Source of the DNA: Paragordius varius
Lineage: Eukaryota; Animalia; Nematomorpha
Reading direction: 5' to 3'
NCBI GenBank assembly: GCA_964247055.1
Contig: OZ176056.1
Location: forward strand, 3,286,001 to 3,350,000
DNA: 64,000 bases
Below the pieces are notes generated by a model. The model was not told the origin of the DNA, searched no databases, and worked only from the letters and a program-made list of their open reading frames with translations. Positions 29,590 to 62,693 of this stretch are shown piece after piece. Position 1 is the stretch's first letter. Each line of letters starts with the position of its first letter. A program made the position numbers and the translations under genes.

Positions 29590-32500
29590 ATGGTAAATTT
29601 TTGGTTGATAAAATTTATTAGTTTGGTTTAACGGATGTTACCATTACGGAACAAGACATAATACCATTTGATAAAGCTAAGCATATCCAATTTGTTGAAT
29701 CATTTGACACTGCTAAGAAAAATCTGGTATATATTTTTTTAAATTAAAGTTAAATGCCACCATAGATCACCTAAAATTGAGCGGCTTATATTGGTGTTGC
29801 AATTCTCTTGCTCTATTAAACGCGTTAGAAACATTCCTAAGCAAACCTGGGAAACGTGATGAACTCATAAATTTTATTAAATCATGTGAATGTGAGAATG
29901 GAGGTTATGCAGCCAGCGAAAATCATGATCCTCACATATTATACACTTTAAGTGCCATTCAAGTTTTATTTTTGTCAATAAAAATTATTATAAATTAATT
30001 ATTTTAACTACAAGCTAATTTTTTAAAAAATGAATAACCTAAATTTTTTAAATTTTAAATTGCCTATCTTTTTTACCCAAAAAATTCCGTTACATGTAGA
30101 AATAATTGTCCGACTAAATAACATAATTTTATAAAATTTTTATTTGTCTTCTAATTTATATTTTACTTTTAGAAGTTTTACCTTGTTTGTTTAGATTTGC
30201 ATTTTAATTGATGCTTTAGACATATTAAATGTCGATCGAATTGTCGCATACATCCTAAACTATTTAAATCCTGATGGCAGTTTTTGCGGCGATGACTGGG
30301 GTACTTATTTAATATCTATTTGGAAAAAGATATATTAATTTTTCAGGTTTTTCCATCAATCTTAATCTCAAAATATTTTTTAAAATACACTCTGTATTTT
30401 TCTCGGAAAGTTTTCAGGTTATAGAAATTTTGAAGAAAAAATAAAATTAAAATATAAAATGAAAAAAACAATAAGGGTAGAACAAAAAAACTACGTTTTT
30501 GACTAAATATTTTTTATTATCGGAACTTGAGATAAAAATTTATGATTTAATTCTTAACTGTAAAATTAATTTTTATTTAGAAGCATATTTAATAAATTAT
30601 AAATATATTTCATATGTAATTATAAACACCATCTTGTTTTTGTCTCGTTAGTCACTGTTCTTGTGTGGATTTAAAAACGTTTTATTTGAATATCGTAATA
30701 ATCAATTTTAATGTTGAAATCGCTAATTCAAATATACCTTTTAACAATTCAAATTCATCCTCGAACAATTTAAATTTACCCTAAAATAAATTATGTGTTT
30801 TTTTAAGATTACATATTACCTATATTTTTATATTTTTAAATAATGAAATTTAAATACTAAAATATAAAATAATCAAATAAGATGTATTTCATTCTAATAA
30901 TGAGTTTTATTAGTCACAAAAAACATAATATATTTATAAGGGAATTGTTCATGGGTAAATTTGAATTGTAAATGGTATGCATATAAATTTTGAAAATGAT
31001 TATTATTTTTTTGAGATTCATTTTTATTTTTTAACAGGTAAAAATTATCTTTTATTTTATATAAGAAATGGGAAGTTGTTAATTTCATTTACCATTTTTG
31101 AAAACTTTAAATCTTGAAATTTAAAATATTTAAATTATTTTATAAATGGTGAATATTAATACAATTAAAACGTTTTTCATATTATATATTAAAGTATAAT
31201 ATTTTTGAATTTTCACCAAAAAAGATGATGTCCAACATTTTTAAATTAATAATTTCATATATATACCATTTACAATTTAAATTCACCCTTGAATAATTCA
31301 AATATATCCTAAAAAAATTGTGTTTTCGGGCTAATATAACTCATCATTAATACGAAATATATTTTTATGACATAGTTTATTATATATTCAGTATTATATT
31401 AATTTAAAACAAAATTTCAATTTTTAAATATATAAAAAAATATAGATAATTTTCAACCAGAAAAAACAGATAATTTATTTTAGGGTGAATTTTAATAGTT
31501 TAAGGGTGATTTGAACTGTTCAAGGGTGAATTTGAAGTGTAAATGGTGTATATACAGGTATTTTTATAGTTGCCTATTTCACATAGTTGGACGATTTGCA
31601 ACACAGTAGTTTAAAAAATAACTAAATCATGAATAAACAATTATTTCCTTTCTTTTTTTCCATACTTTCCTGTGTTGCGAATTGCCACTATGTAAATTGT
31701 TGTTTCTAATATAGTTAAAAAAACTTTTATTTTAATATGGAAGGTAATGGTTAATTTTTGTAAAATTTAAAAAGTTTTCTAATAACTTTAATATTAAAAT
31801 CTTTAAAATTTGCTTTATTTTTAAGGTGAAATTGATACCCGATTTTCATTTTGTGGTCTTGCATGTTTATCACTTTTGGGTGAGTTGGATGATAGCTTAA
31901 CAACTCAACAACTCACATCCATAATAGGCTTTATATTGCGTTGCCAAAATTTTGATCAAGGATTCGGTAGTAAACCTGGGTCTGAATCTCACGCTGGTCA
32001 GGTTTAAGTTGGTTTTTTTTTCAAGTTTTTTTTGCAAATTTTATAAAACCTATAATAGCACAAAAAATGTTATATAAAAATATATTTAAACTTTACTTTT
32101 GTTAGAATATTACCGTTTCCTTTTTTTAAAGTTTTATTTTTATACAAACTCTGCTAAAAACACTAATCACAACATAATGTTATCATTTTTCTCTTTTTTG
32201 ATTGATAGATAAATAGGGTCCTACTTTCTGTTTGATTTATTTTATCATTTGATAAAATAAAACTTATGTAAAATTAACATAATTTAATTCTTAAAATGTA
32301 AAATGGACATCTGTTTTAGAGAATCTCACTTTTAAAATGCGCTTAATATAAATAGCACCTGTATGCATTTTTTTAAATTAAATAAATTATATCGTATTAT
32401 CTTATATTGGATAATAATCAAGTATGCCTATTTTTTTTGATAAATGCGCTTAAAACGGTTTTCCATGGAACTTAAAATTATTTTTGAGACAATTAAAAAT

Positions 32501-38000: not shown

Positions 38001-41000
38001 CATTAATGATTGTCCACTGGAATTTAATTGGAAAAATTTTCATTCAATAATTGTGTTTTTAATTAAAAATTATCTCCATGTATTACGCTAACAATGGTTA
38101 AAAGTGATTGTTATATTATTTTGATATTTTATCATCAAAAATAAAACCGTTTTTATTGACTGGGAAAACGTTTTTATTGACTGGGAAAACGTTTTTATTG
38201 ATTGGGAAAATGTTTCGATTGACTGGGAAAACGATTCGATTGATTGGGAAAATGTTTCGATTGACTGGGAAAACGTTAATTTAGACTGGGAAATGGTATA
38301 ATACAATAAAAAAATAATTTTAGATTGTGCATTTAAAAATAACAAAAAAGGTATATTAACCGTTTTAAATTTCAAGATACCACCTTATTAATACACGCAT
38401 CTCTCCATAAATTTTAATAAATCTAATTTATCCTGGGAAAAAATATAAATCGCAAACGATATATTTAATAATTCTTTATAAAAATTCAAAAAAATTAATA
38501 AAAATCAATCAATCAATAAACTAATTAATCAATACCCCTTTATTAGTTTTAGCTTGCATAATTCCATTCCAAGCACCAGTTATAGTGAGATAAGGACTCT
38601 TATCAAAAGGGCCGAAAATTTGACCAATAAATTGATGTTTAGTTCCCCCGTAAAAGGGCTAAATAAATAATGGGCAAAAACAATAAATTAATTTGGAAAA
38701 ATATCATCAGTTATTCAATGTTCAAAATAAAATTAATATAAATCTAATATATAGACTAAAAAAAGTTTTTATTTTAAATTAAAGTTCATTACCCTAAAAG
38801 GTTGATTAAAACATAATATTTTATGTATAACATAAATACTTGATACTAACAAAATTCCAATAAAAAAATCTTAAAAATTTTAAATTTTTTAATCAATTTA
38901 AAACTAAATTTTTTTAAAACACCTTCCAAAAATATCCACTACAACTTAAATGTATATATTGAATAAAATGGCTAAATATCAAATAGATATATATATATAT
39001 ATATGACATAAAATATCTATAAAAATTTATTTTATGTAAATAAATTTTAAATTTTTTAAATTTACTTTAGTCAAAAATTCAATGTCAGCGAAATATCCCG
39101 TTTTAGAACAAGTTATGGTAACTTTACCACCCAACTCCATCCATGGTACGGAGAAAATTGATCTATAAAAGAATCAAAAAAGTCAGAAATTAATTTCAAA
39201 ATGTTTTTTTTTGTTAGAATTCAATTTTTTTAAACATATTAATTTAACCAATAATATATATAATCTTAAATTCCCCCTTGAACAATTCAAATTACCCTTC
39301 GAACGATTCAAATTCACCCTAAAATAAATAAATTACACTAGACAACAAATTTTTTCTCCACTCGAGTTTTTTGCATTTTTTGATATTTAATATCATTTTA
39401 ACAGTAAATCTGAAATAAAAATTATAACTCGTTGGAAGAATTTTGTATAATTTGATTTTTTAGATTATGCGCCCTCTTTATCCAAATTTTACTAAAAAAT
39501 GTTTTTCCTTGAAAATATACAAGTAATGTCCATTTGTAATATATCATTCGAAAGAATATTAAAAACTCTATAAAATGTATACTAATATGTATTACATCGA
39601 CAGTTAATATTGGACACAAAGAGCGACAAACGCGCGAAGCGAGAGCTTTTTTTTTAATTATTATATTTTTAAAACTAATGGATGAAAATAGTTCAAACTT
39701 TGTTTAGATGGAGATGAATGTCCAAAAAAGATAACACAAGAAAGTTTTTTTTGATTAAAACATTTTTTATTGCTTTTATGTCACTCAAAACAGCCATTTT
39801 TAAGTTTTTTGTTTTTTAAAAATTACCATCTCATCAATATTAATTTATTTTCTATACAAGGCTGATAATTTCGAAAATTTAAAAATAAAAACAAAGTTTA
39901 AGGTATTTTTGATCTTTTATAGCCATTATGTAATAAATTTACAGTTATAACTATGCATTTTAGTATCCACTAGGTAAAATATTTATGATAATTATAATTT
40001 TTATTAAAAAAGCAAACCAAAAGCTTTTCCAAACATTTTTTTTAAATTAAATACTAATATAACCCTAATAATAATATTAAAATAATTTAAATGATTTAAA
40101 AATTAGTTTGTCTGTGAAAATTCCTGACTTATTTAAGGGTTGAAAATTTTGACCATTTAAATCCAAATAACTTTTACATCCGGTGGATTTAATTGACTTA
40201 CTACCATTTAAAAGATGCAGTTTTTTGCGCTCTTTCGAATGATATAAAATACATGGCTTCATATCTAAAACTTTAAATTTATGAAATTTCGAGTTTAATG
40301 TTAAATCGGGGTCAAAAATTATCGATAAACTCTAATATAAAAAAATTCTTTCATGTAGGACCAATTTTCTTTTCAGATATACTAATTATGTACTTTAATG
40401 AAATAAATTTTAAATTTACAAGAATGGCTGTTAAAAAAAGTTAAAATTTGTTGTCTAGTGTTATGTGTTTTTTAAGTTTAAAAATTAACTATACTTTTTT
40501 TATAATTTTAAAAAATAAAATTACGTTTAAAATAATAAATAATACTGAAAAAATAATAAACTATGCATAATATATTTTTTATTAATAATGTTTTATAAAC
40601 CCGAAAACACTTAATTTATTTTTAGGGTGAACTGGAATTATAAATGGTATCTATAATGAAATTAAACCAAATGCTCAAAATCAGTTATTTTATATTTTCG
40701 ATTGATTATATAAAAATCCTAATAAATAGTCAATTCTTCGCGAAAACATAAATAATTTTTATTAATCAAATTAATATTTTATTAAATTATGATAAAAATA
40801 ATTATTATCATTTGAAAAAATCTTTATGCATAAAATTTTTTAAATTTTAAGTAAACTAAAAAAGGTTTTTTACCTTGCATAGGCATTAGGAAAAGTGCAA
40901 ACATATTCTTCATCAAAATCCAATAATTTTATATAGGCTTGTCCAACCATATGTACTCCTAAATTTAATATTTGTCATTAAGAATATATTTAAAATTAAA

Positions 41001-44000
41001 TTTTATTTATAAAAAAAACAATTGAATACATTAAAATTCAATTTTAATTGTTCAATCTATGAAATTAAAGTTTATGTTACTTATAAAAAAACATTCGTCT
41101 AAATTTATTTGATTAATAAAAAATATATTTAAATGTTTAAAAAAATTAAAATAAATTGAATTTGTAAAATTAATTTTTATTGTACGAATTTTTTATAAAA
41201 TAAAAATACCAATAGATAGGCCTAAAAATTTTGATTTGGTCCATATATTACCATTGATACAAATGCGCTTTTCTGTATTCTCTGCATAAAATGCAGAAAC
41301 TAAAAACAAAAAAATAGAAATTTATATAGAATTTTTTTTGAGATTTTTATATATTTAACCATTTTTTACACTAATTAAATTTTTACGGTTTTATCTTCTG
41401 TACATACTTAAAATTATTCTGAATTACACTGGTTTTTTAAAAGATGTTAAAAAATTATTAAAATGGCATTAATAAGCAGTTTAATGATAAAAAATTATTG
41501 CTTAGGAATTTTGGTTAAACAACAATCATGAGAAACGTAGGAAAAAATATCTCTATAACGCCATAACTTAAATTATATATACTTTATAAATGATTAAAAA
41601 ATGCCTATTTATATATTAAATTTAATTATTAAATTGTCCCAAACCTATATTGTTAACAAATATTCTAAAACTAAATTATTTGAAAAACAGGCAAAGTTGT
41701 CAAGGTTTGGAATTTTAAATTACAAAAAAAATGATTTACTAGGTGGATGATGGGAAACCTGCTCGGCAACAAAACTCAAATTACAATCTTGATTGGAATC
41801 TAACTATAAAATAACAACAAGAAAAATTAAAAAAATAGTAATTTTGAGAAAATTATTAAAACTGGCTTTTCGCATATGAAATATGTCGGCTATATTAATA
41901 ATATATATATATATATATATATATAAAGATAATCAACATTAAATTTTATGGTAAAGCGTTTACAGTTCAAATTCCCCCTTGAACAATTTAAAATCACACG
42001 CTAAAAATAAATTATGTGTTTTCGGGCTATAACTCATTATTAATATGAGTTATATTTTTATGGCATAAATTATTTTTTTAGTATTTTGTAAAAGAAATTT
42101 TATTTTTAAAAATATATAAAATATAGGTAATTTTTAATCTTAAAAAACATATAAAATATTTGGGGGTGAATTTGAATAGTTTAAGGGTAAAAATGGAGTT
42201 TGTTACAAAAGTAATAATAAAATCATTTCTTAACTTTAAAAAAAATTAAACTTTAGTTCAATATAATGACCCTTAACGTTAAGAATATTTTTTTAATGTT
42301 TAATCAGATTATTATTCCTATCATGGTTGAATGTTGAAAAAACTAGGAGAATTTAGCCAAGAATACAGAAAAATAAACTTAAAAAAATAAAAATATCATT
42401 AACATAAATTGAGAAAAAGACCCATTTGAGGCGAAAATTCCTTTCTTGTCAAATAAAGCGAATGATCATAAAATAGTAATGTTTGATACATGTGGAAAAC
42501 ACATTTTTTTGTAATATAAATAAATATAATTTCCCAATTACAATTTAAAACAACTTAAAAACTTTAATAACCATTTTTTTAGCAATTATGAAATTTTATC
42601 TATTTCGATGTAAATATTTTGTATTATCTGGAGATCAAAACCTTAAATGGTATTAGTTATAAAGAAACTAGGTTGAAACATGTTTGAATATCAATATTGC
42701 AACGCTCTTTTATTAAAAAAAATGACTTTTATATAATATAAACGCTTTCGACTTATATTTCAAATATCTTACTATATTAATAGTTTTAGAGCCATTTTGA
42801 ACAGATGATTTCCAATGACACATAAAGACTTCACCCAAAATTGGGTTAAATGGTTTCTTAGCTACGGATTGGCGTCCGCTATGGAAAGAACTGAGATAAT
42901 ACTTAACGACTTGTGTCATACGTTCGCGGGCTGTTTTATATTCCACTATGCTAAATAAATAGTAAACTCTAAAAAAAATTTAATTATAGAGCCGGAATAA
43001 TAATTATGTTTAAATGTTTTTTGAGATTAAGTGTTGAATGTTATTTGTTGGTGACATATACCATTTAGACTCTAAATTCACCCTAAAATAAATTATGTGT
43101 TTTTTGTTAAAATCACCTTTATTTATCAATATCTTTAAAATCAAAATTATACTGAAAAATTAACTATGCAAATATATATTCCATATAGATAATGAATTAT
43201 ATGAAAACGTTTATTTTTAGAGTTTGAAATTTTTGAAGAGTTAATTTAGATATCGAGGGTGGAATTGAATTGTTCAAAGGTGAATTTGAATTGAAATGGT
43301 ATATAATAGACTCCTATATTAAATATATATAATACTAATTAAGGATGAAAACACCCCCATTTGGAACTTGAACTTTATTTCAATATGGTGAAAACTCAAA
43401 GATTAAAAGACAAATATTTTTGTAAAGACATTTATATTAATTAAAACATTTATATTATTGATTGAATATATAACATTTATTATTGTATTTAGTTATAAGA
43501 AATAAGGTGTTTTACCAATCTAAATTTATTTTACATAACAATAAGTTAAAATATATGGCAAAAACGCCTATAAATGATTTGTAGAAATGGATTATTAATT
43601 TATTTAATAGATATCTAATTTTTGGTTATATTTGTATAACGGTTTTCAAGATAAAAAAAATTAAAAAAATATAAAATTGTGAAAATGATGTGTGGTAAAG
43701 ATATTTAAAACTAATGAAAAAAACAGTAAACATTATTGGAAAAAACTAGTGAAATACCCTTTATTAATGGATGGATTATTCAATTGTTTTAATATAATTG
43801 AGATAAGTATAATTAATTGTGTTATGGTTGCATATTAAATATTTTCGGAACGGTTAAGATTAGCATTTTGCTTTTCAATTTCATTAGTTTCACGTATAAA
43901 TCGTTTTGAACGATCTTCAATGTTAACCAATACTTCTGTTTTTGCTATGTGGTGACCTTAAAACAAATGTGTCAGCAAGTCCGGAATTAAATTTAGAGCA

Positions 44001-47000
44001 GTTTTTTGTTTTTCTGGTAATAATGATTGCTTGATTGCTTTTTTGAACAAATTAGTTATTTTAGTTGTCAATTGATAATCATCGCTTAATAGTTGATCAT
44101 TCATTTTGTTAATATACTGCTCGTTTGTTAAAATGACGGTGGAGTTTCCTTTGTCGGCAGGTAACATTATAATGTCAGGGTTATTAATTGCCTCTTTGAA
44201 GGCTTGGATTTCGTTTTTTGTATAATTTGCTTAGAGAAGCTTAGATTTTTTGATAATATGACTGACTGGTTTCCATTCGTATTATATCGGGCTTGCTATT
44301 GTGAAAGATTGCAATTTCCGTGATTATGGTTTCGAATATCAAGCCTTCAAATATGCTATTAATAACCCTGATATTATAATGCTACCTGTACACAAAGGAA
44401 ACTCCACCGTCATTTTAACAAACGAATAGTATATTAACAAAATGAATGATCAACTATTAAGCGATGATTATACAATCCATAAAATAGACCCGACAACTAG
44501 AATAACTAATTTGATTAAAAAAAGCAATCAAGCAATCATCATTACCAGAAAAACAAAAAACAGCAGCCACACCTAAATTTACTATCTCCCCGCGGATTTA
44601 GGGTCTACCTAAAGTTTATAAAGATGGAATACCATTCCATCCCATTATGAGTAATATCAACTCGCCGATGTATTTCTTTTCCAAACAACTGCTTAAGCAC
44701 CTAAACCATTTGCATACAGAACCACATCTTATGTCAAGAACAAAATTTTGTTAACAAAATAGAAGAGTTGAACATCAAAAATGCAGATCCACGTGTAAAG
44801 TTTGATGTACAGTCTCTCCTCACAAGATTTCCTAAAAACGAGGTTATTAACTTATTAAACAATATAACAAACAAAGGTTTGCACCCTGATATATTCCTAA
44901 ATTAGTTTTTTCATTTTACCAACCAATTTTACTTCCAAAATTACGGTACACCTATGGGATCAAGCATTTCCCCAATCCTTGCCGAACTTATATGGAAAAT
45001 TTTAAAGAAACAATCTTTAACTCCACTACCCTAGCTCTAAGTCTTTGGTTACGATATGCCGATGATAAGTATGCAAATTGCGAATAATATAAATAGTAAT
45101 ATAAAATTTTCCATGGAATTTAATAACATGTCTATCAGCTTCTTAGACACCCTCGTTATGAAAACAAAAAATAAAAAATTCGGACACAACATAAACTTTA
45201 CCTCAATGTTGACTCCCATCATCACCCTACCCAAAAATGATCAATTATACCATTTACAGCTCAAATTCACCCTTAAACAATTCAAATTCACTCTTGAACA
45301 ATTCAAATTCACCCTCGAACAATTCAAATTCACCCTCGAACAATTCAAATTCACCCCAAAAATAAATTATGTGTTTTCGAACTAATATAACTCATTATTA
45401 ATGAGAAATATATCTTTGTGGCATAGTTTATTATTTTTTCAGTATTATTTAATTTTAAAATAAAATTTTTATTTTATAAAAATATATAAAAATATTGGGT
45501 AATTTTTAATCTAAAAACATATATTTTATTTGAGGGTGATTTTGAATTGTTCACGGGTTAATTTGAATTGTTTAAGGGTTAATTTAAATTGTAAATGGTA
45601 TATCAAAACTCTAATTCACCAAGCTCAAGAAATATGCGAATCCACCTCACTGCGACCCGAAATCCACCACCTCAGACAATATTTTCAACAAAATGGCTAC
45701 CATCCCGAGTTTTTCAATAGAATCCACAGACGAAACACAGCTAAGCAACAATCAAATGATCAATTCGTTGCAACTGCCTCTCTACCCTTCATTAATAATG
45801 TAACCAGAAAAATCGGTCACCTATTAAACAAATTTAACATACGTACGTACAATATATAAAACAATGTCTAAACTTATCAATCACACAAAATATAAAGACT
45901 CTATCCCCCGCGAAAAAAGACCAGGTGTTTATAAAGTCACGTGCTCCTGTGATGGTGTTTATGTCGGAGAAACAGGTCGCACCATTGATCAAAGATTAAA
46001 AGAAAATAGACAATACATAGGCTCTAATAAATTTAATTCTGGACTTGCTGACATATTTGTTCTCAGGGTCACCACATAGCTAAAACACATAATCATTGGT
46101 TAACATTGAAGATCGTTCAAAACGATTTATACGTGAAGCTATTGAAATTGAAAAGCAAAATGCAAATCTTAACCGTGCCGAAGATATGGTGTTGTCGAAC
46201 ATTGGGAATTACAACCTTAAATAATATTTTATAATGCAACTATAACACAATTTATTCTTGTCTCAATTATAATAAAACAATTGTATAATCCATCCATCCA
46301 TTAATTAAGGGTATTTATAACTGGTTTTTTCCAATAATGTTTACTGTTTTTTTTCACTAGTTATAAATACCATTACCACACATCATTTTCACCATTTTAT
46401 ATTTTTTTAATTTCGTTTTAATTTTTAAAATATAACCGAAAATTAGATGTCTACTAAATAAATTAACTATTTATTTTTTAAAAATCAATTGTGCGCGTTT
46501 TTGCCATTTACCTTAACTATATATTTCGAACAACAATAAGTTATTATTAAAACCATATAGTAAGTAGTCTTTTTGTAAAAAATATTTGTCTTTTTTTAAC
46601 GTTTTGCCTTTATAATATAAATTTTATTTGGTTTTATAATTTTAAGTTGGAAAATCTCAAACCCGCAAAACGTGCTTGCATGAGCAAAAAAATCTGCAAA
46701 CATTTCTAACAAAGATCGGCGTTCCAATATAAACGTGGGCAGAGTTACTTTCGTTAAATCCATACCTATCCGGACTTGTGATAACAAATGTTTTATCATA
46801 CTCCCATATTGGCTTAAGTCTTCACCTGTATATAGGGCAGCAATTGGAAAATAAAAAAGTAAAAAGTATGGTAAGAATTAAAATTGTAACTATAAAGGAA
46901 TATAAAGAATTTTTCATACGTATACCATTTACAATTCAAATTCCCCCTTAAACAATTCAAATTACCCCTTAAAAAATTCAAATCACCCTTAAACAATTCA

Positions 47001-48796: not shown

Positions 48797-51700
48797 CAAG
48801 CTTTCAAAAGTATAATTGGCTTTTAGGAAAAAATATATTTTTAAATTTTGGTCTATATACATATAATTTTATGATTTAGGCAGAAAATGACACTGTTATA
48901 CATAAATATTTGATTATAACCTATCATTTTATGGCGTTAATTACATATGTAAATCCATAGAGTTAAATTAAACATTTAATATAGGTTAATTGTAAAATTA
49001 ATAATTTTTTATAATTAATCTTATTTTTACTCATTAAAAGTAAAGTTTAATTGCAGTTTTGTATCCTTTATTTTATCAAAAATTTATTTTTTTTTCGTTA
49101 AATGGGTATAAATATTTGGTAAAGAATGGAAAAAACAAGAGCTCTATGGTATTAACAATATCATATTCATCAATATAAGAGTTACCATAGAGCTCTTGTT
49201 TTCCATTCTTTACCAAATATTTATACTCATTTAACGAAAAAAAAATATATTTTTGATAAAATAAAGGATACATGACTGTAATATGATATATAAATATATT
49301 GTCAAAATTACTTTGTTCATTAGATTGATTGATAATTGGGTGGTTATTATTAGACGATATGTTTAAAGCGTCATAGAAATGCAATGAATCCTCAGTATCA
49401 CTAAAACTCAAAGATCTCGACCTTTGAATGTTTTGGTTTTTTAATAGCAAAGTATCCTCCACATTTAAAGGGGTATTTTCTATAAAAAAAAACAAAAGAT
49501 TCATAACCGCAGAAAATATTAGCTTTAAAATGTTGAACCAAAGCGATATATAGGTAATATTAATTTAAGGAAATTTTCGTGTAACTAATTAAATGCAAAA
49601 GTTAGAGATTATTCAAGGATTAGATCACTCGAGAAAAAGGTGAAATGAGTTAAGGAAATATTAAATTGCCTAGATCTTTAAAAATTTGCGTAAAAGACCA
49701 ATAAAAGATAGACAAAACCTATTAAATCATGACTGCTAAATCATTTATAGTATTTATATATTATTATAATATGTAGCCCACTCACATAATGACACCAAAA
49801 AATAAATGCAATCTTTTCTATTATTTACATTTTATATATCAATTTTTTACATATGTATATATTAATTTACAAAGAAAATATATATATATTAATTTTATAG
49901 TAACTTTTATATAAAAAAATATAAAAAATCCACAAACTAGCAAATTTATGAAAATTAAGAATTGTCGTTTATATATTACGACTCAACTATCTTACAAGCC
50001 AATTATATAAAAATCATCATCAAAATTGAGTAAATATGCGGTTTGACTTTTTAAAAAGCTTATATTATAATTAACCAATTGTGTCTAATAGCCCATCTAT
50101 TTAAAGAAAAATTCTACCTTTCCCATAAGACTGCGTGTGGTTTATTCCATTGTTTCCATTATTATTGATGATACTTGAAGGCATTACAACTTCTGTACTG
50201 CTCCAGATAGATGAAGGAGGGGTATTTCTTAAACTACTCAAACTTAGGCTTTTACTCTAATTAAATAATAGCAAATTTAAAAATGAAATTATATATAGCG
50301 GACAAAACGTAAAAATGAAAAGACATTTATTTTGTGGCAATAAAGACGGTTAATTTCTTCGAATCTTGATTTTGAGATTTTAGTTATTCAAAATAAGGAA
50401 TAGTGAATACTCAATTACATATATTTCAAATATCTCAGTTATGGAAAAAATTAACAAGGTTTTAAATAAATATATATCTGTCTTTTTATACCATAAATAA
50501 AAAAATTTATTAAAATTTAAGGATTCCATACGTGAATGACAATATAATAATTAATTTGGCAAACGTATGAATATATTATTAACAAATAAAAAATTTATTA
50601 ATAAAATTTTTTAAAAAAATTTATGTTTATAAGTTTTTAAAAATTGTATTCTGTACATAAATTCCAATTTTTTATTGTATAAATTACTCGATCATCGCTT
50701 TCTATGCTAGGAATTGAGGCTGATAAGGCTAAAGATATGGGAGCATTATTGCTTAGCAATTCCTCTTTGCAAGACATTTTCTGAGTCAAAAATGTAGTAA
50801 TTAAAATTATTTAATAATAAGGCTTAAAGTATGTTAAGAACAGAAATTAAAGTTTTTATTAAGGGCTAACTCGCGCTATTTAAAATGTAAACCAAATGAA
50901 GGCAGACACCGTTAAAAAAATTTGTTGGCCATTTAAGTTATAAAATTTCTGTATAATTAAATAAGTAAATATTTGATTAGAAGGAAGTAATATATATAAA
51001 GGAAAAGTAATTTTTCTATGTTTTAATTAAATGTATCAAATATTATTTTTATTTTATAATTTTGCTAAACAATTAATGAATAAACTTGAAAATTAATAAA
51101 TTTACAATATATAAGAGTTATAACTAAACCAGTTTTGATTTCAAATAATATCAATAAAAAAATCAACAAAAAAAGATTAGTTTCGTATATAGATTAGCTA
51201 ATGATATATTAAAAAGTAATATTACATTTATTTTGATATTTTTATTAATTTTTTATTAATATCATGTTAAGGAAAGTAATTGACTGGTTAAAACCCTTGT
51301 TATTCAATGTATTTCAACTAAAATAATAGTTTTATTCACTAGGCAAAAAATAAATTATTTAAATATTATATAATTTATTAATTTTAAAAAATATTTTTTT
51401 TCAAACAATCATTTACAATGCATAAATATAAGGGCATTTGAAAAATAAATTAAAAAACTTTTTCGTGTTGAATTGTTTCATTTGAAGGTGAACCCAATAT
51501 CAAAGGTGGTAAGGATGAATGATAAATGCCACAAGTTGGATATAATGCATTCTATAAAACAATTAAAAATTTAATAGAAGTCTGCTAAAAAATTAGTAAA
51601 TAATTTTTTTTCCCAAGATTATAATTTGATTTGTAATTTTATTTAATAAGATTTTTGAAAAAAAATATTATTAATAATGAAAGTTATAAATTTAAACAAA

Positions 51701-54700
51701 TTATTCAATAAATTAATACATTAATATTATTTATTTTAAAGTTTCTATATATTTTATTAATTCAACATACAACTTTTTAATAATATATTTTATTACAAAA
51801 ATTAAAAAAATATTTCGCATTAAACAAAAAATAATACAATAATTTAAAAATATTTATAAAAAAATTAAAATTAAGATTTATATATATATATTAAAATAAT
51901 CAGAATTTTATAAAAAAAACTATAATAAAAAGAAATTACCCTTGTAATTTGCAAAATGACTATTGAATGTTTAACACTGTCTATCAGAGCCTAAAAACAA
52001 AATAATAACAGAAAATTCCAAAAAATTTATAAATAAATTTAAATACAAATTTTTATACGCCTAATCCTAGAACTATATTAAAAATTAGGGATTAAAAGGT
52101 TTTTCCAAAAAAAAATATTATAACAGAAAATTACTTTTAATTTTTGACTTAAAAATTCTTATTTATTAAATTTATCTTATAATATTAATGTATTAAAATA
52201 TCTAAACGCCATCCTTTTCTAACGAGAATTTACATAATTTTTATAAAAATATAATTTAAATAAAATTACATGAGTAGATATTTTGATTTCAACGTATTTC
52301 TTATATATTTCATCATCTTCGTTCATTGCTTCGATTTTGGATTCCAATTTCTGGAAAATAAAATATTAACTTTTTAAAAAACGATAACACTAATCAACAA
52401 GGTTTTGCACCACCCCCTTATTTTTGCATTTTCTGATACCTAATGACATGGAAAGGCCAAAACAAAAAAGAAAATTGAGGCCACCAATAGGATTTTTCCA
52501 AAATTTAATTTTTAAATTTGTGTTTAATTCAAAAATAACAATCATTCCTCGTGTACATATGTTTAAATATTCAAACAAGCAAGTCGATACAAGTAATATT
52601 CCATGCATGGATAACAAATTCTAGGCATTAAATAAGATACTAAACAAGCTAAGAGCCAAAGTATTATAAATCTAAAAGGGGCTTATGTATAGTGTGATAG
52701 ATATGGGCGGCTGCACAAGCTCTGCATATCCCCCAAGAGATCCTATAATTATGCCAGATATGGCAAAGATAACAATAAGTAATCGTAAAGTGCGATAAGA
52801 GAGACTTGCAAGCAAAATCGTGGCAAATTGACATGTCAAATTAACCAATTTACAGAATAAAGTTAGTATATTCTACAATTAAAATGAATATAAATTAGGT
52901 AAATACAAACGGTCCAACCCCATAACAGTAAATTCTACTAAAAGTGGCTACACAACATCCATCTGAAATTCAAAATACAAAACAACCAATAATATCAAAA
53001 AAATAAGGTATATCCACTAGGTATAAATAAAGGATTTTTTATAAGAACCAACTCAAGAGAAAAAGTCTAATAAGTACTCGAAAGAACGAAAACTAACAAA
53101 AAAATATAGCCTATCTGAAAGCCGAAGGTTTAAACCATAGAATGTCTTTTTTAGTATTTTTTTGAAAAAATTTTATATGTGTTAAAAATTAACTTGAAAA
53201 AAAAAGACTAAATTTTGACGTTTAAGTGCGTACTATTTTTTTCTCTCTGATATATAAATGACATATTTATATTCAAAAGATAGAGTTTAAAACGCTTTAT
53301 TAAATGATATTAAGTTTATAATATAATAACATTTTATTATAAAGTTATATTTAATTTTCTCTCGATTTTCTCTTGTTTTTGAAAATTTGAAAAACCTATA
53401 AAATTTTAAAATTCTGATTGGCGGGATCAAAAATTTTTTCCGGTTTTAAAACACTAAAATTAGTCATAATTTAAAAAGTTTGAGTGGTGGTGCTTAAAAA
53501 TGTCCAAATTCGTTGACTAGTGTAATTAACATATTTTCATATAAAATATCAGTATATTTTAAGATTTATATTATTTTATTAAATATTATAGCTAAACAAA
53601 AAAATCAAAGAAAAGATGTATGAAAATCCATTATCTTCATTAATTTTGTCGATTAATTTTAAATATTTTATGATATTTATGGAGATAAGACTATATTTTT
53701 AGTGAGAAATTTATAAATATTATAACATTGGTAGATATAGTGTAACAGGGTTAATATCGTCAAAATTATTGAGAATTAGTTAACAATTATATATTGAAAC
53801 ATTTAAATAATCATATATGTAACAAAATTATGGAATTTAAGTTTTTCCCTAGGAGATTTAAATAAAATTCATAAACTTAATTTAAGATAATTTTATTTAG
53901 CTATTGACGCTTACATAAAATACAAGTACATTTAGATAAAGAAATTCTTTACACTAAATACTTAAATGCGCTGTTAAAAAATTTAATGACTCCGCAAAAA
54001 ACTTTTATACCTTAACTTGTGCAATTAATATTTGAAGGTAAGCGTCTGCTTCAGCGATTTTTGCATCAAATTTTTCATTTTGTTGCAAAGTAAATGTGTT
54101 GTTTTCTCCAACATTATCCTTCACAAAAAATGTGTTTTAAACATAAATACAGTACATAAAGTCAAAATTAAGAAAATAATAATTTGACATTAAGACCATC
54201 ATATCTTTTAAATAAATTATCAAAATAAGGATAGACATTTTAACTGGTAATATACTTATTCATAAATTTCACTGTTGGAATCATTAAAGTTATAAAGTTA
54301 TATAGAAACAGGGTCAAAAAAGTAAAGCTCTCTTGATAAATTTATTCTTGGTTTTTTTACGCGTTTGTAATAATCTTTAATTTATCTATTTATATTCTCC
54401 AGTTTGATTAAATTAGATTTAAACATCTTTATTTTTGGATAAATTTTATTAAGATTATTAGGAAATAATTATTTATGGTTAAAAAGATAAAAAATAACTA
54501 CTAAAATAGGGTACATATACCTCCTGATTGACATAACCACTTTTGTCATTTTCGCTTTTGGATTCATCTATATTCAAGAATTAATTTATGCAAAACAAAA
54601 TATATTATTCAAGAAATATTAAAAATATTATTTATTAAATTTAACCTTTGGATCTTTGCAAACATATAGCATATTCTAATGCTTTAACCCATTTTTCACG

Positions 54701-55065
54701 TTCAAGAATGTCACGAGCTAAACATAATACAAAATAATTAATGGAAAAAACATACATATGATTAAAAATTAACTCTTACCCTGGAAATGAAACTGTTTAG
54801 TATCACTCGTGATACTAAATCCACTATCATCCTCGTCATCAATACCAATCATAGCATTCTAATTTTTTATAAAACGAAAAAAAATTAACCTTCAAATGGA
54901 TAACACCTCTGCAAGAACCACGTTTCATTTTATCTCTAGACTTTAAAATTATATGTTAAGGTGTACCGTATAATATATAAGGAAACCATTCTTTGAATCC
55001 AAAACAAACCATCTGTATTGCCAACCATTAACTAAGTTTGTCCATTTACTTAAGGGACCTTCCAT
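35065..55065 (-). CDS. OSBPL9: Oxysterol-binding protein-related protein 9 (PH + ORD), ~787 aa
   Basis: 24 phase-consistent exons: 54967-55065 ([23 protein letters not shown]), 54890-54940, 54780-54858, 54646-54717, 54521-54567, 54011-54118 ([10 protein letters not shown]), 52270-52350, 51940-51990, 51459-51551, 50688-50780, 50118-50256, 49312-49479, 48621-48705, 48246-48343, 46663-46825 ([21 protein letters not shown]), 42773-42950 ([10 protein letters not shown]), 41740-41803 (EQVSHHPP), 41210-41299, 40874-40958, 39066-39162, 38536-38658, 36511-36602, 35660-35795, 35065-35136. Confidence 0.96.
36780..36996. mobile_element. MITE family 3, Tc1/mariner-like (TA|CAGTATGCATTTT...)
   Basis: TIR CAGTATGCATTTTTATGATTGCTTATTTCAC / GTGAAATAAGCAACCATTAAAATGCATACT with TA flanks; related copies ~31555-31710 and ~48415-48575. 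Confidence 0.78.
37208..38298. mobile_element. Foldback element, TACCATTT family, variant C (unit AACGTTTTCCCAGTCAATCGA)
   Basis: TA|TACCATTTCCCAGTCTAAAT...ATTTAGACTGGGAAATGGTA|TA; 10 left and 6 right 21-bp units in inverted orientation; ~690 bp core with no recognisable coding content. Confidence 0.92.
41957..42190. mobile_element. TACCATTT family variant A, eroded ends
   Basis: tttacagttcaaattcccccttgaac, family core, gggtgaatttgaatagtttaaggg. Confidence 0.7.
43059..43301. mobile_element. TACCATTT family variant A copy
   Basis: TA|TACCATTTAG...TTGAAATGGTA|TA. Confidence 0.82.
43593..44332 (-). mobile_element. Penelope-like element, inverted internally deleted copy
   Basis: [28 protein letters not shown]...; joined directly to the GIY-YIG tail and 3' UTR; reverse complement of 44333-44565 and 46021-46462. 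Confidence 0.88.
44333..46462 (+). mobile_element. Penelope-like retroelement (RT + GIY-YIG endonuclease), 5'-truncated and decayed
   Basis: [60 protein letters not shown], and [28 protein letters not shown]...REAIEI; stops, frameshifts and a MITE insertion. Confidence 0.93.
45248..45600. mobile_element. TACCATTT family variant A inserted into the Penelope ORF
   Basis: TA TSD at 45246-47 and 45601-02; removing the element plus one TA restores tca att atc aaa act (SIIKTLIH). Confidence 0.95.
46923..47331. mobile_element. TACCATTT family variant A copy, 8+3 units (reverse orientation)
   Basis: TA|TACCATTTAC...GTAAATGGTA|TA. Confidence 0.92.
47455..48040. repeat. ~210 bp degenerate tandem repeat, interrupted by a deleted TACCATTT copy (~47545-47656)
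   Basis: gtaaaagactaatatata..ttaggt.caaaaaa...aaatccgttatat...gttttgcagaaaaagacgaagtccaaaaattaatt repeated. Confidence 0.75.
48748..48792. repeat. (TA)n microsatellite (one of many, e.g. ~1183-1210, ~23318-23351, ~26071-26098)
   Basis: Direct reading. Confidence 0.95.
49086..49246. repeat. Near-perfect inverted repeat (~65 bp arms, 31 nt loop)
   Basis: 49086-49151 is the reverse complement of 49183-49246 apart from one substitution and a 2-nt A-run difference. Confidence 0.92.
52390..53160 (-). pseudogene. Decayed hydrophobic multi-TM reading frame; nad2-like NUMT candidate
   Basis: One frame of ~257 codons with 7 internal stops; MGL..LPNLYS, KL and [10 protein letters not shown] spaced like nad2; T- and G-rich strand. 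The R..LAYSS motif is not visible. Confidence 0.4.
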
Positions 55066-58000
55066 CCAAAATCGATTTAAACCATGCGGTGTTTAAACAT
55101 GCGTAAAGGTGTATGAATTCATTAACACTTGGATACAATCATTTTCAGTTCTTCGATTCAAGCACTAGTAAGATACTCCAGACCTGTTTGAAATTAATAG
55201 CTTTAAAAAATATGGAATTTGAAAACATGGCAAAAGTTTGCACTTGTGTAACATTAATAAACGGAAATATAAAATATTTTTTAAAAAAATAATTGATATT
55301 ACTTATTTACAACACATTCATTTTAGTCTTTCGATTCAAATTGGGATAGTTGGATACCCCAGGCCTGTTTAAAATTAAATACTTTAAAAATTATGGAAGG
55401 GATACATACTATGGTAAATGTCTGCACTTTTATTAAATAAATGAACCAAAATATATAAAGCTCCATCAAAAATACTTGATATTACTTATTTTACGGTAAA
55501 ACTCAAAGGTAAAAATTTAGTCGACATGACAAGTGTTCATTAGCTAAAAAACACAACATAAACCACTTTTTCTGTTTATATCAATGTTAGAGATTTAAAT
55601 AATTAGCTTTATTTTTAGCTTCAAAATTAAATAACCCGATATTTTGCAAAAATATTGCATAAAAATGGCGCCAAAGTAGTTTGATGCGAAACTTAAAAAA
55701 CTTGTTTAGATATTTCGGCTTTATATAATGTTAATTAGGATAGAAGCATAAAATTAAACGTTTCTTTTAGTAGTTTTTTTAAAATCTCAACTTAAAAATA
55801 GTCCGAGGTATTCAGACACCCAGATTTGAATCAAAGTGTTAACATAATACAACAAATATCCACATACTTTTTTAGTATCCTATACATATAAAAACTTCAT
55901 GACTTATGGAATATTTTAATATTCCAGCGAGATAAATTTAAATATGCTAAAAAGTACCGAAGAAGTTAGGCTTATAAAATTATTCTCTAGGCCCATACTA
56001 GAAAAAATTAGATGTAAATTGTAAAAAAAGTCTCATCTTAAATTTTTTACCGCCAATTTTTTGTGAATTTTAAATGGCATTATGGCTAGGAAATGTAATG
56101 AATTAACCTTAGTTAGATTTCACGCTGCATCCAGCAAAAACTTGATATTTATTGATTTAAAAATAAGCTGTTTAGCTCAATCCTGTTTTGAAGCTGTTCC
56201 AATACTCTATAAGTCACAAAATTGGAACAATATATGATAATAATTAAAAAAGTAATTTTCGAAACATTAATTTATTCTCAATGGGCTATGGAAGTAAGAC
56301 TACCGATTATACCATCGACAAAAAGTGAAAAGGTCATGTGTTAGGAGTAAATTTTCTGGCCAAAGATTTAATCAAAAAATATCCTAATATATATCATAAA
56401 CTCTATATAAAAATCATTATTATATTTTACGCAGGCTCAAAAAACTTATTTGGAAACGTTTGACATAGAAATTTCTCTTAAAAACCTAAAAATGCCGATA
56501 TTGCGCAATAAAAATATTAGTTATAAGCTTATTAACAAAAAATGTATTTTGCAAAAAAATGGGTTTGCTCGAAAAAATTATCAAATTTTGTTGAATAGAA
56601 TAATATGATATTTTCGATCATGTTGGAAACGATATATAACTTTTAGATATCATAAAAATTGTTTTTATATAGTTTGAAATCACTGAAACATTAGATTATT
56701 CCATAATTTTGTTTGACTTCGAATTGTTAATAATTTTTATATGTAGTACAAATAAATAATAATCTTAGGCATAATTAGCATCGTTCGATTGTATAGAATT
56801 GTTTTTATAATATATTTAAGTATTTTTATGCCGTTTATGCTACAAAATACCATAAAATCGCTTTACCAAAAATTATTACATTATAATTTAATCAAAACAT
56901 CCATTTAAAGCTTTGAAATTTAGCACATATTATCATGATATACAGGCATTTTTGTGTCTAAATTAATAAACTTGCTGTAAGCCGGTCCAAAAATTTGAGT
57001 CTTTTGGAGACAACATCTTAAATTTTTATATTAATATTCTTTTGCTTCTTATATATTTATAATTTTTTACTCATATCCCTTAGGAATGAAACATTTAGTT
57101 TTCATAAATCATTTTTTTAATAGAGCAGCTTTCCTATATCACTGTAAAAACCAAGATCACCATGATATGTTTTATCACGATATTTTTACTCCCAAACTGG
57201 TTAAGTATATATATATATATATATATATATCACCAACATTTAATTTTAAGTGACAAAGCATTGGGGGTATTAGATTTATAGCCATTAAATCTTTAAATAT
57301 TAATTACCGCTTAATTATTTTAAAGCTATAAATGTTAAAGTTGTCGACTTTGGAAAAGTGTTAGGTTTTTTGGATTAAATTTGGTAAATAAGGGTATTAT
57401 AGTGGCTTTTAACTAATAAATAGAGTCTCATGGATACACTCTTTTAATTTGTCCCAATTTTCATCCTTATTCTTTAGGTAAACAATTATTTCGACAAAGT
57501 CACAGTGGGTCATGATAGGACATAGTTATTAATATTATACCTACATTATGAATAAACATAAGTATATGGTAGTTTTACCATAATTTTGAAGCATTCGAAA
57601 GAGTTTGACTGTATTTAACTTCATAACGGTAAATATTGAGAAAAACTGGAATATCGATTTTGGAATTCATTTTTAAATGGGGTCAACTAAGCCTATACCA
57701 AATATATCTCGTTTCGTTTAAAAAACGATTTCAATAAGATTTTGTGGTAATTTATTCTGTATTTGAGCTGTTTACGCAAATATTTTATTATTCCTTACCA
57801 ATTTAAGTTGGTAGGTTTTGGTATAATATTTGAAGAAAACGGCATTTATCTTGTATATTAGGTCAAGCAAAAAATTTTTACTATCTGAATACGTGTGAGC
57901 TACATCTTAGTTAATTTTCATTAACTAAGATATAACCCACATTGTTAGCATCTACGACTTTATATAGTATCTGATAATCTCAGTACTTAAAAGAACTAAA

Positions 58001-58635: not shown

Positions 58636-61600
58636 TTAGTCACCTGCTTTAGTGGGTTGTTCTAGAACTGCTTTACCTTCTGTGATATCATCATTATCAG
58701 CTGTGTTCTCTCTACATTCATCTTGAGATTCGGTAGTAGGGCGTTTTTTACATCGCTTGCAAACGCATTTAACGATACAAAAAAGTATTAAAATTTTAAC
58801 GATAATTAATCCTACAACTAAGACAATGATAATCGTTTTATGTTTTGCAAGATATGCCTTGGCTTTGGGACTAAGTAGCAAATTTGGAATTCCCTCCAAC
58901 ATTGTTTGATCGGTTTTATCTAACGAGGTGTCCGCATTTTTATAGAGCGTTAAATCTATTTGACAATCATTGATTTTAGTGTGGGAAAAGGGTGTTTTCC
59001 CACATTTTTGCACATATATATTGCTTTCGTCAGAGTTTGGTACAACTTGAGTATTATTAAAATCAGCGTTTTGTGAAGTGTTAAAATTATTTTTTTCTTC
59101 CGATTTTGGCGGTAATAGCAAGCAATATGGTTCAGTATCTGAAATATCATGGGCCTGGCAATACCATCTCGTATACCAAAGTGTAAATTTGGCAAAATTG
59201 CAATCACAACGCAGGTCATTATCTGTTAAGTCTATGTAAGTTAGTTGTGTGAAATTCCTAAATGAATTATCGCTAACACTTGCAATGTTATTGGAACTTA
59301 AATCGATAGTTATAAGTTTGAGCGGCAATTCATAATTTACGAAGGTGATGAATTGATTGAATGATAGATTGAGTTGTATTAGGTTTGGGAGATTGATAGT
59401 GGAAAACAATTTGGGGGGCAAATTGCGTAAAAAGTTTTCGCTTAAATCCAGCTTCAATAGTTTCGTGAATCCTAAAAAGATTTTGGAAGAAATATTGAGG
59501 CAGAGTATTGTGAAAAAATATTTTTTCATAAATCGATAAATTAAAAAGAGCGTTTCATCTCAAAAAAAATAAAGTCGTTTTTAACGACCATAAAAGATTT
59601 TATAAGATATCGGCATGTCTCCCTGAAATTGGTTAGTTATATTCTTACATAGGTATATCCATATTTAATTAATAGAATTTGATAATACAAATTTTTAAGG
59701 GTTATCTTATTTGTATAATAACATAAAAAAGAGATACGCCTTTTTCAGCCAAATCTGTTTTCATGGATTTTTTTGCAAAAACCGTTTTTGTGCTTATATA
59801 AAATTATTCTAGATAAATAATTCAAATGGGTTTACTGTTTAAAAACAATAACGGGTCGACTGCTTGTAAATACAGTACCTCATTGTCCTGGCAGTTATCA
59901 TTGATTATAAAATTAGCTGTTTAAAATGGATAACTTCAAAAATAAATTTTAACCGGCTCAAATTTAAAAAATGAAATTCGTAATTTATAAATGAAAATTT
60001 TATATACTTAGAGAGTCAAGATGGAAAAAAGGAAAGTCTAAATAGCAATCAATGGATTTAACCTAGAAAAAACCGAACCCTATTATTATTTCAAACACAG
60101 GATGATCATGTGTTTGAATGGGATTTTTAAAAGCCTACACAGTCACGTTCATGAATGAATTAATTAACCGAAAGCCTCATGAAAATGTATTTAAAATATG
60201 GATAAGAATTTCTGGATGAATATCTTATCAATACATTGATGAGAACTATTAACTATTTTAACAACTGAAACGATGGTTTACCCCGTCGCTATTTACGGAT
60301 TCGAATCATAGGTATGTAAATCTATCCACAAACGCGCATCAACTCATTTTAAATGTGGTGCTTCCGGATAATTAAACATTTCCTAAAAACCAAAAATTTT
60401 ATTTTACGATCTGGTGATCTAAACCAATTAAAAGGCCACATTTTTCGATCCGATTCCAAGGAAAAAAACATTGTCCTTGAGTTGCTTGATGGGTCTCGCA
60501 AAAGAGGCGGTCCCAAAAAGCGGTTTCTGGATATCATCAAATCAGTTAAAGCCTTACCCTCTCCCAAATAATTCAAAAGTCTCAAAATCGGCTGGAATGG
60601 AAAACGTTTATTAATGAGAATGCTAAGAGTCGCTACGCGACTAGCTTCTAAACAACAACACGTTAAAGTAGTATATGGTGATTTAATGCACTAATATACC
60701 ATGGATAATTTATGATAACTTATCAATCATTTTAACTTTACAATATGTGATAAATATATTACCTGCAAAATAATTTTCGGCCAAATCTTTTAACCGAACC
60801 GAATTTATTGTTAAACTTTGTAGGGTTGGTCCTACCTTTATAAACATTCTCGCAAATCCGTAATCAGGAATGGTCTTTGTCGAATTCTTACCACGTATAT
60901 CTCGATTAATGTATCCCTTGATTATGAAATGTTGAATATTTAATGTGCTAAACAAATCAACGCTATCAAAATCATCTGTGTACTCCAATTGAATAAGGCG
61001 TATCCGTTTTAGCTGAATATTAAATTTCAGGAACCCAGCGGCCAGCAGCCCTTGGAAATTAGTGTATGTACAAAATATTTCTTTCCCCCCATCCCTACAA
61101 TCACAGGGTGGGACAACTTGACACGTGTAAGTGTCACACTCAGAAATCATACTTTTTAACGTTGGTACCGTTGTAGACTTTGGTGTAGCAATTATGTTTG
61201 GAACAATTTGTTTGGTTTTTTTCATATTATTTCTATCATTAATATCAAAGAATTGATTTTGGGAACCTTTAATTTTAGGTATTGGCGTCACAGACGACGC
61301 TATTGATTTAGTACTGCTTTCATCTTTGGGTGGGAATATAAATTTTTGGAGTGATATATTTTCTTCATCCGTTACATCGTCAAGTTCATCATCTACGCCA
61401 CCGATTATTGCGTGTGGAGTCAACAAAAAATGGCAAAATGTTTGTTGTAAATCAGTTTGCATAAATTTGTTGGCAGGTATTTTAGGCATATATTCTTTGA
61501 GTGCTGAAAAAAATTTACGATTACCGCATGTACAACTCACCGGGTTCCCAGTCAAATTTAGGAAAAATAGGGTAGGAAGAGCCATAGTGACAACATCGGG

Positions 61601-62693
61601 TACAAAAGTGAATTTGTTCAGTTCCAATTGCAAGGATGCATTTTCAACAATTTTTACATCCAACACGCCAAACCAATCGTATGTGAAATTCGCAGATGTC
61701 AACAGTAAAATTTTGATTTGTAATCCAGGTGAATAGGATAAACTATTTACCACTCGAATCAATGGATTGAATCCGAGATACAATTCACGTAAATATTTAA
61801 GGTCAGCCAGGGTGGCAACGTCAAACACGGTAAGAGAGATATTGGTAACTGAAAAAAGGCGCAAATATCTCATATTTTTGATTAAACCCAATGGGAGTTC
61901 ACGGATCGGATTGTGCCGTATTGAAAGGGCTTGCAGATGTAGGTAATGACTAAAAGACCAATTACACAGTCTAGTAATATCATCATATCGTATGTATAGA
62001 GTTGTAATGCGTGCACTAAAATTAAAGTAGGGTATTTCACATTCGCGATCAAAGAGTTTGGGTGAAAAGATAATCTCCAGATAAATTTCATCCGTCGTTA
62101 ACCAACTGTGTTGGCTTACAAGACCGTTTACGGTTTCAAACGTAACTGTTTGACATTTTATGCGACTGGTGTTTAGGGTTCGACTCCGTGTAATGTCACA
62201 ATTCAAATCATGGTATTGACATATATTATCTACTCATTGTACAAAAGATATCTCAGAATGTAAAAATATTTACGAACTTATTAAAAATATATTCATTTTT
62301 GTAACGAAAATCAGAAAAATTTATTGCAAAAACAGTAAAAATTGATTGATATTGTTCAAACAAAACAAAAAATTAACAAATAATTTTCCTTAAATCATAC
62401 TTTTTAACCATATTTCCTGTATAAATTATTTAATTACAATTGTAATATATAAATTGTGTCACCAATTTACATCTCTATTTCATAATTTGCAGTTTAAAAC
62501 AATGCATTTTTTGAAATGATTTATCTTTTATACTGCCTGTATCCAATTTTCACTGTAACATTACCCAAAAACTCAATCAAATACCTTTGCACGAATTAGA
62601 ATTTGATTCATGACCGGCTTCAAATATAGTTAAAACAAAAAGAATCGATAATAATAATAATAACCTATTTCTTTTTAACCATAATATTAACAT
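58636..62693 (-). CDS. Single-pass LRR transmembrane protein with two LRR cassettes, no TIR, ~803 aa
   Basis: Exons 62585-62693 (MLILWLKRNRLLLLLSILFVLTIFEAG, signal peptide), 60763-62229, 58636-59471; LxxLxLxxN repeats; LRRCT motifs LTGNPVSCTC and LTDNDLRCDC; TM IIIVLVVGLIIVKILILFCIV; ~45 aa tail. Confidence 0.9.
60030..60660 (+). mobile_element. RTE-clade LINE 3' remnant in LRR intron 2
   Basis: TMVYPVAIYGFES*...RINSF*MWCFRII...GHIFRSDSKEKNIVL..DGSRKRGGPKKRFLDII...NRLEWK; ends in aacaacaac. Confidence 0.8.

Follow-up and report, generated by a model that had tools for sequence, protein, structure and literature searches.

Two segments of 26 and 31 nt at the 5′ end of an ORP9/OSBPL9-like gene of this hairworm, an ordinary gene for lipid transfer, are very probably genuine U2-type GT-AG spliceosomal introns, the first and second of the gene, and shrunken forms of ancestral animal introns. 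The gene lies on the minus strand of the window, the 64,000-nt stretch of DNA analysed here (G000:C7:3286001-3350000; GC 19-35%), which is part of an assembly of 110.6 Mb in 44 contigs. Each segment has GT at its 5′ end and AG at its 3′ end, and removal of both restores an open frame that is colinear, exon by exon, with homologous proteins.

The sequence-only reading had given coordinates, lengths and flanking peptides for the two segments around a 51-nt exon, and all of these prove correct on the minus strand. Its claim that introns of 62 and 78 nt come next and kilobase-scale introns later also holds, with a 402-nt intron in between. In window coordinates, the exon-intron anatomy is:

54967..55065, minus strand: exon 1, 33 codons, ATG at 55065-55063, MEGPL...IYYT; first PH-domain strands.
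54941..54966, minus strand: intron 1, 26 nt, phase 0, GT..AG (GTACAC...TTAAAG), with an in-frame TAA.
54890..54940, minus strand: exon 2, coding, 51 nt, 17 codons.
54859..54889, minus strand: intron 2, 31 nt, phase 0, GT..AG (GTTAAT...AATTAG).
54780..54858, minus strand: exon 3, coding, ending in FHFQ and base 1 of a split codon; matched by tblastn to four foreign loci.
54718..54779, minus strand: intron 3, 62 nt, phase 1; position and phase common to loci L001, L035 and L036.
54646..54717, minus strand: exon 4, coding, end of the PH domain.
54568..54645, minus strand: intron 4, 78 nt, phase 1, placed from sequence.
54521..54567, minus strand: probable exon 5, coding, 47 nt, placed from sequence alone.
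54119..54520, minus strand: putative intron 5, 402 nt, GT at 54520 and AG at 54120-54119.
54011..54118, minus strand: exon 6, coding, 36 codons in an open frame, with putative boundaries.
46668..46844, minus strand: first ORD (oxysterol-binding) exon, Pfam PF01237 positions 2-42, by tblastn.
42812..42958, minus strand: ORD exon 3.7 kb downstream of the first, PF01237 positions 46-93, by tblastn.
38533..41782, minus strand: further ORD exons, by tblastn with ORFs of L001 and L035.
41782-41735, minus strand: the ORD exon among these that carries EQVSHHPP, by tblastn.
41306-41205, 40935-40873, 39164-39066 and 38604-38533, minus strand: remaining ORD exons, with introns of ~0.3-1.7 kb between them.

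Beyond intron 5 the introns measure ~0.3-3.7 kb, and the gene reaches ~35.6 kb in the window. If intron 1 were retained, in-frame reading would give VHLNI and then TAA, a stop after five codons. Retained intron 2 contains no stop in frame, but the resulting frameshift leads to a stop 7 codons further on. Candidate branch-point motifs are present in intron 1 (CTTAAC or TATAAT), and intron 2 has T- and A-runs; because the sequence is so AT-rich, such motifs are expected by chance.

Upstream of exon 1, a three-codon uORF (ATG GTT TAA) occupies 55077-55085 on the minus strand, 12 nt ahead of the main ATG. Read in the frame of the OSBPL9 start codon, a further nine codons upstream are open (..LNRFW), with a faint resemblance to the ..SKRF that precedes MEGPL elsewhere in animals; this upstream extension contains no AG acceptor.

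The identity of the gene follows from its domains, with exons searched one by one, such that the alignments are per exon and not of a spliced protein. Exon 1 matches positions 3-33 of the Pfam PH domain (PF00169) and aligns with the solved PH domains of FAPP1, ORP11 and CERT. A frame at 49076-49504, between the PH and Oxysterol_BP exons, contains the FFAT-like HFYDA, and the downstream exons match the Oxysterol_BP domain (PF01237). The layout typical of ORP9 is present, comprising an N-terminal PH domain of the FAPP/CERT/ORP type, an FFAT-like motif and a C-terminal Oxysterol_BP domain. On these domain matches, the gene is of the ORP9/10/11 type, and the name OSBPL9 is plausible. Searched singly against PDB and Pfam, exons 3 and 4 gave no match, as these exons are too short.

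Positional homology carries the case that the two segments are introns. The stop-free frame that surrounds exon 1 (54949-55092) was used in a word search; exon 1 matched 25 short ORFs on genomic contigs from other animals, at 73-82% identity. In 25/25 of these foreign ORFs, the similarity runs through ...LLSYYT, continues into a GTN codon (V) and then gives way to divergence. This indicates that an intron starts at exactly that codon in all of them. Five of these foreign loci were fetched and their exons located:

L001: 56-nt intron at position 1; none at position 2, where exons 2 and 3 are fused.
L002: 375-nt intron at position 1; at least 394 nt at position 2, where the contig ends.
L035: 281-nt intron at position 1; none at position 2, exons fused.
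L036: 143-nt intron at position 1; none at position 2, exons fused.
L037: 199-nt intron at position 1; 52-nt intron at position 2.

The position of intron 1 is thus occupied in 5/5 foreign loci, by introns of 56-375 nt, and that of intron 2 in 2/5, by introns of 52 and at least 394 nt. In L001, L035 and L036, exons 2 and 3 form one open frame that is colinear with the window exons, with no residue gained or lost. The uninterrupted L001 ORF makes the second junction precise. By tblastn, its residues 1-17 align to 54940-54890 and its residues 18-44 to 54858-54778, so exactly 31 bases, GT..AG, are without counterpart. Over exon 2, 13/17 residues are identical to L001. L002 and L037 also have these 17 codons as a separate exon, with an intron on either side.

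Junction 1 was judged by the residue numbering of CERT PH structures, with no intron-less homologue at hand. The 32nd residue of exon 1 aligns to CERT residue 32 (2rsg) or 39 (4hhv), and the frame of exons 2-3 aligns from its second residue at CERT 35 (2rsg) or 42 (4hhv). In this numbering the last residue of exon 1 is 33 (2rsg) or 40 (4hhv) and the first of exon 2 is 34 (2rsg) or 41 (4hhv), leaving neither gap nor surplus. Because the intron positions and the micro-exon are common to other animals, the alignments mark the 51-nt exon 2 as an inherited micro-exon and both tiny introns as old introns that shrank.

Other explanations of the two segments have to be weighed against these alignments. 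The main transcript could use other junctions, for instance a single 108-nt intron (54859-54966) that skips exon 2, or cryptic sites. As 26+51+31 gives 108, a multiple of three, exon-2 skipping keeps the frame, and an alternative isoform of this kind is possible. As the main transcript it is very unlikely: exon 2 is conserved in its own frame, as the identities to L001 indicate, it encodes a part of the PH fold that aligns to CERT residues 34-50, and other animals flank the same 17-codon exon with two introns. Removal outside the spliceosome, either by IRE1/RtcB-type cytoplasmic splicing or by ciliate IES-type DNA elimination, has the 26-nt size in its favour and nothing else; the XBP1 intron of mammals is 26 nt. 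Here, there are no twin stem-loops and no unusual stability (fold z-scores of 0.65, -0.28 and 0.69 against shuffled sequence), and the ends are GT/AG, not TA/TA. A fold no better than that of shuffled sequence, together with the GT/AG ends, therefore rules out the XBP1-type and IES-type explanations. The positions also coincide with ordinary introns of other animals, making non-spliceosomal removal the least probable of the alternatives, with a chance close to nil.

A decaying pseudogene or an assembly error, with the two AT-rich segments as insertions, would fit a repeat-rich genome in which a dispersed repeat lies 51 nt upstream of the ATG and a retroelement in a later intron. Against this, the recognizable exons are all open and conserved over ~20 kb, each segment is bounded exactly by GT and AG at an intron position that is conserved, and the flanks show, by reading, no target-site duplication. 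Sequencing runs also argue against an assembly error, as four DNA-like runs carry 76-85% of the region's sampled words, while a run under another organism label carries 23%; the four runs may be the assembly's own source data. The recurrence of a tiny-intron class in many genes adds to these arguments, and a pseudogene or assembly error is accordingly still less probable than alternative junctions in the main transcript.

The preferred reading remains that both segments are spliceosomal introns. On this reading, introns at two ancestral animal positions have shrunk to near the physical minimum in this lineage, very likely Nematomorpha. The conserved PH domain requires the removal of both introns, and their excision in vivo is predicted. 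Recognition likely proceeds through intron definition, with U1 and U2 pairing across the intron, and the minimal signals may comprise a 5′ GTA/GTT, a 3′ A/T-AG and an A-rich stretch before the AG. Both introns belong, on this reading, to a genome-wide, discrete class of ~19-31 nt. This class coexists, even inside one gene, with a ~46-88-nt class and with kilobase-sized introns that bear transposons, and it clusters among the first one, two or three introns of a gene. Five small runs under the same species label, guessed to be RNA, carry almost none of the region's words.

Neighboring genes contain further tiny introns. Exact cases were read within ~95 kb:

RABGGTB: 29 nt at 29593-29621, directly after the ATG, and 23 nt at 29727-29749; exon 3 matches Pfam Prenyltrans PF00432.
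OSBPL9: 26 and 31 nt, introns 1 and 2.
TAF9: 25 nt (phase 1) and 23 nt; across the 25-nt break, the positions of Pfam PF02291 continue without interruption as 36, 37, 38.
ATP6V0E: 29 nt, then a 61-nt intron; PF05493.

All exact tiny introns (7/7) are intron 1 or 2 of their gene, in a small sample of four genes. Their lengths span 23-31 nt, and a second short class in these exact cases spans 61-78 nt. The 5′ end reads GTA in 6/7 and GTT in 1/7, A or T precedes the AG in 7/7, and an A-rich stretch lies upstream of the AG. The RABGGTB pair, whose pattern of tiny introns 1 and 2 the sequence-only reading saw repeated in OSBPL9, reads as claimed. The wider pattern of 5′ position stands in part: tiny introns come first in OSBPL9, RABGGTB, TAF9 and ATP6V0E, but one probable exception follows a 1.39-kb intron. 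This probable exception is a tiny intron of 22-31 nt (G000:C3:8849637/8849660).

The size spectrum of introns across the whole genome was approached through profile matches, exon by exon, to five families (small GTPase, E2, CCT, ORD and proteasome), which gave 91 usable introns. Their sizes were estimated from genomic gaps and profile overlaps and are good to a few codons; sequence was read over 264 kb, and sizes elsewhere are estimates. The 91 inferred introns comprise 13 of 19-31 nt, 0 of 32-45 nt, 13 of 46-88 nt and 65 longer ones (>100 nt). This genome contains a discrete class of ~19-31-nt introns, as seen in this rough five-family sample. The 13 inferred tiny introns all come from small GTPase or E2 genes, where they make up 13/40; the CCT, ORD and proteasome domains have 0/51 (Fisher 6e-6). 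Where one gene mixes sizes, the short intron precedes the kilobase intron, though exceptions exist. Two small GTPase genes (G000:C5:5361143-5361730 and C2:7964739-7965373) each have three inferred introns of ~19-29 nt along the whole Ras domain. A de novo census that bridged open frames, with composition filters, gave no excess of GT-AG over control dinucleotides in 264 kb. Codon-usage scoring over 14-codon flanks was too weak for this purpose, with known exons scoring like random open frames.

The lengths of the tiny introns also bear on the proposal that lengths divisible by three (3n) are avoided through NMD. The length modulo three is exact, as it is given by the frames of neighboring profile matches. 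Lengths of 3n account for 0/13 of the inferred and 0/7 of the exact tiny introns, 2/13 of the short and 24/65 of the long introns. However, the profile search reads through stops and merges exons of the same frame into one row, which biases ascertainment against 3n introns. Four profile-match rows with 8-12 surplus codons and 2-3 in-frame stops are candidates for 3n introns of 24-36 nt (G000:C1:6948764-6949147, C4:11872323-11872550, C5:2896295-2896489 and C2:9804654-9804854). When these four are added, the 3n share is about that expected if only stop-less 3n introns were invisible. Because same-frame exons merge and the four rows may hide 3n introns, the apparent 3n depletion is not established. 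Of what the sequence-only reading had proposed, the non-3n lengths stand, and their avoidance through NMD is neither supported nor refuted.

A recent survey reports animal introns below 30 bp from Myxobolidae and Dicyema japonicum only, and predicts further lineages (PMC13644364, September 2026). The MBE paper covers 51 genomes. In the hairworm genome papers searched, the word intron is never used. The ultra-short introns known from myxobolids, Dicyema and ciliates are removed by ordinary spliceosomes (PMC13644364, PMC5014332). The likeness to Myxobolidae and Dicyema includes GT-AG introns of <30 nt at conserved positions between conserved exons, in animals that are parasitic, and weak signals (GTa and AG in PMC13644364, with an A-rich stretch upstream of the AG here). 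In Myxobolidae, the median intron is 22-27 bp (PMC13644364). In contrast to those animals, in which nearly all introns are tiny and genomes compact, the tiny introns here form a minority beside kilobase-sized, transposon-bearing introns in the same gene. Genome-wide miniaturization, with a median of <30 nt, is not found in this sample, as 13/91 inferred introns are <35 nt and 65/91 are >100 nt.

The closest pattern is that of neodermatan flatworms, tapeworms among them, which combine two discrete short classes with long introns in a genome that is not compact. In Gyrodactylus salaris, introns have modes at ~32 and 58 bp, and the shorter mode prevails at positions 1-2 (PMC4040987); in Schistosoma mansoni, many genes characteristically have small introns at their 5′ end, which transcript assemblers overlook (PMC3254664). 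The hairworm gene resembles Gyrodactylus salaris in having the shortest class at ordinal positions 1-2 and longer classes later (26, 31, 62, 78 and 402 nt, then kilobases). The ordinal-position pattern is therefore not new in animals, being published for Gyrodactylus salaris (PMC4040987) and noted for Schistosoma mansoni (PMC3254664). Unlike the neodermatans, the hairworm belongs to another phylum (Ecdysozoa, Nematomorpha), and its short mode is ~19-31 nt, with most exact cases <30. The comparison with flatworms sets introns known here from sequence beside the published modes.

Ciliates offer a further likeness in size, in discrete length classes and, in some genera, in a 5′ skew. Depletion of 3n lengths is well documented in ciliates (PMC5014332), and the 3n/NMD proposal derives from there. 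In these unicellular eukaryotes, unlike here, that depletion rests on tens of thousands of introns, as compared to 0/7 exact introns subject to ascertainment bias.

A more far-reaching proposal is that hairworms have a mechanistically separate, position-dependent mode for introns of 19-31 nt. This could be, for example, a cap- or promoter-proximal, co-transcriptional intron definition with minimal signals of its own. Such a mode would have an origin separate from flatworms, myxozoans and dicyemids, in a genome that has kept kilobase-sized introns elsewhere. The sequence-only reading had likewise raised a distinct short-intron mode, possibly promoter-proximal; the tiny intron behind the 1.39-kb intron is a probable counter-example. 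This proposal is speculative, and we consider it unlikely. If true, single genes would allow tests of how small an animal intron can be and of what switches splicing between intron and exon definition.

The window and its surroundings contain several repeats and duplications. An ~80-nt dispersed repeat lies at 55116-55197, upstream of the OSBPL9 start codon, with a second, diverged copy near 55300-55380. At least 40 copies, with 77-83% identity, are found on many contigs, and the repeat may be a MITE or SINE in the promoter or 5′UTR region of OSBPL9. A block of higher GC content (0.32), which spans ~43960-46230 and has long ORFs on both strands, lies within the 3.7-kb intron of OSBPL9. A GIY-YIG-like motif in this block suggests a Penelope-like retroelement, partly duplicated, and units of 21 bp in tandem (NLNCSRV / FELFEGE frames) adjoin it. 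The next feature directly upstream of OSBPL9, at 58636-62206 on the minus strand, is a leucine-rich-repeat membrane protein encoded in two long open frames of 297 and 498 codons. Beyond the window, two near-identical copies of a TPR/TMTC-like gene lie ~19 kb apart (G000:C7:3404500-3410900 and 3423400-3429900; L020-L023). Several exon frames of these copies are identical or differ by a few residues, and the pair looks like a recent tandem duplication.

At 110.6 Mb, the assembly is smaller than published hairworm genomes, which are said to be 200-300 Mb; the GC content of the Gordionus genome is 26.9%. The mitochondrial contig (C44, 15,693 nt; L013, L014) contains a COX1 that is read with TGA as a sense codon, and dozens of perfect palindromes with spacer-free arms of up to 208 nt. 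At L013:6750-7450, this contig also has a 52-nt hairpin unit in a 72-nt tandem array. Nematomorph mitochondrial genomes are known for many long perfect inverted repeats inside genes (PMC6649704), and the palindromes observed here match this peculiarity, making a nematomorph source very likely.

What is new here is the positional homology of both introns and the micro-exon, the mitochondrial test of nematomorph origin, an approximate size spectrum for the whole genome, and the connection to published work on flatworms. If the reading of both segments as introns is true, the hairworm would represent a further independent lineage with introns below 30 nt, located at the front of ordinary genes. 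This case would be more informative than those of the myxobolids and the dicyemid, as introns of three size regimes in a single transcript have to be processed by the same spliceosome. Gene-finding and read-mapping programs that apply their customary lower limit on intron size would break the 5′ ends of many gene models in genomes of this kind, and such broken models could feed the apparent gene loss or the low BUSCO (71.6%, Gordionus preprint) of hairworms.
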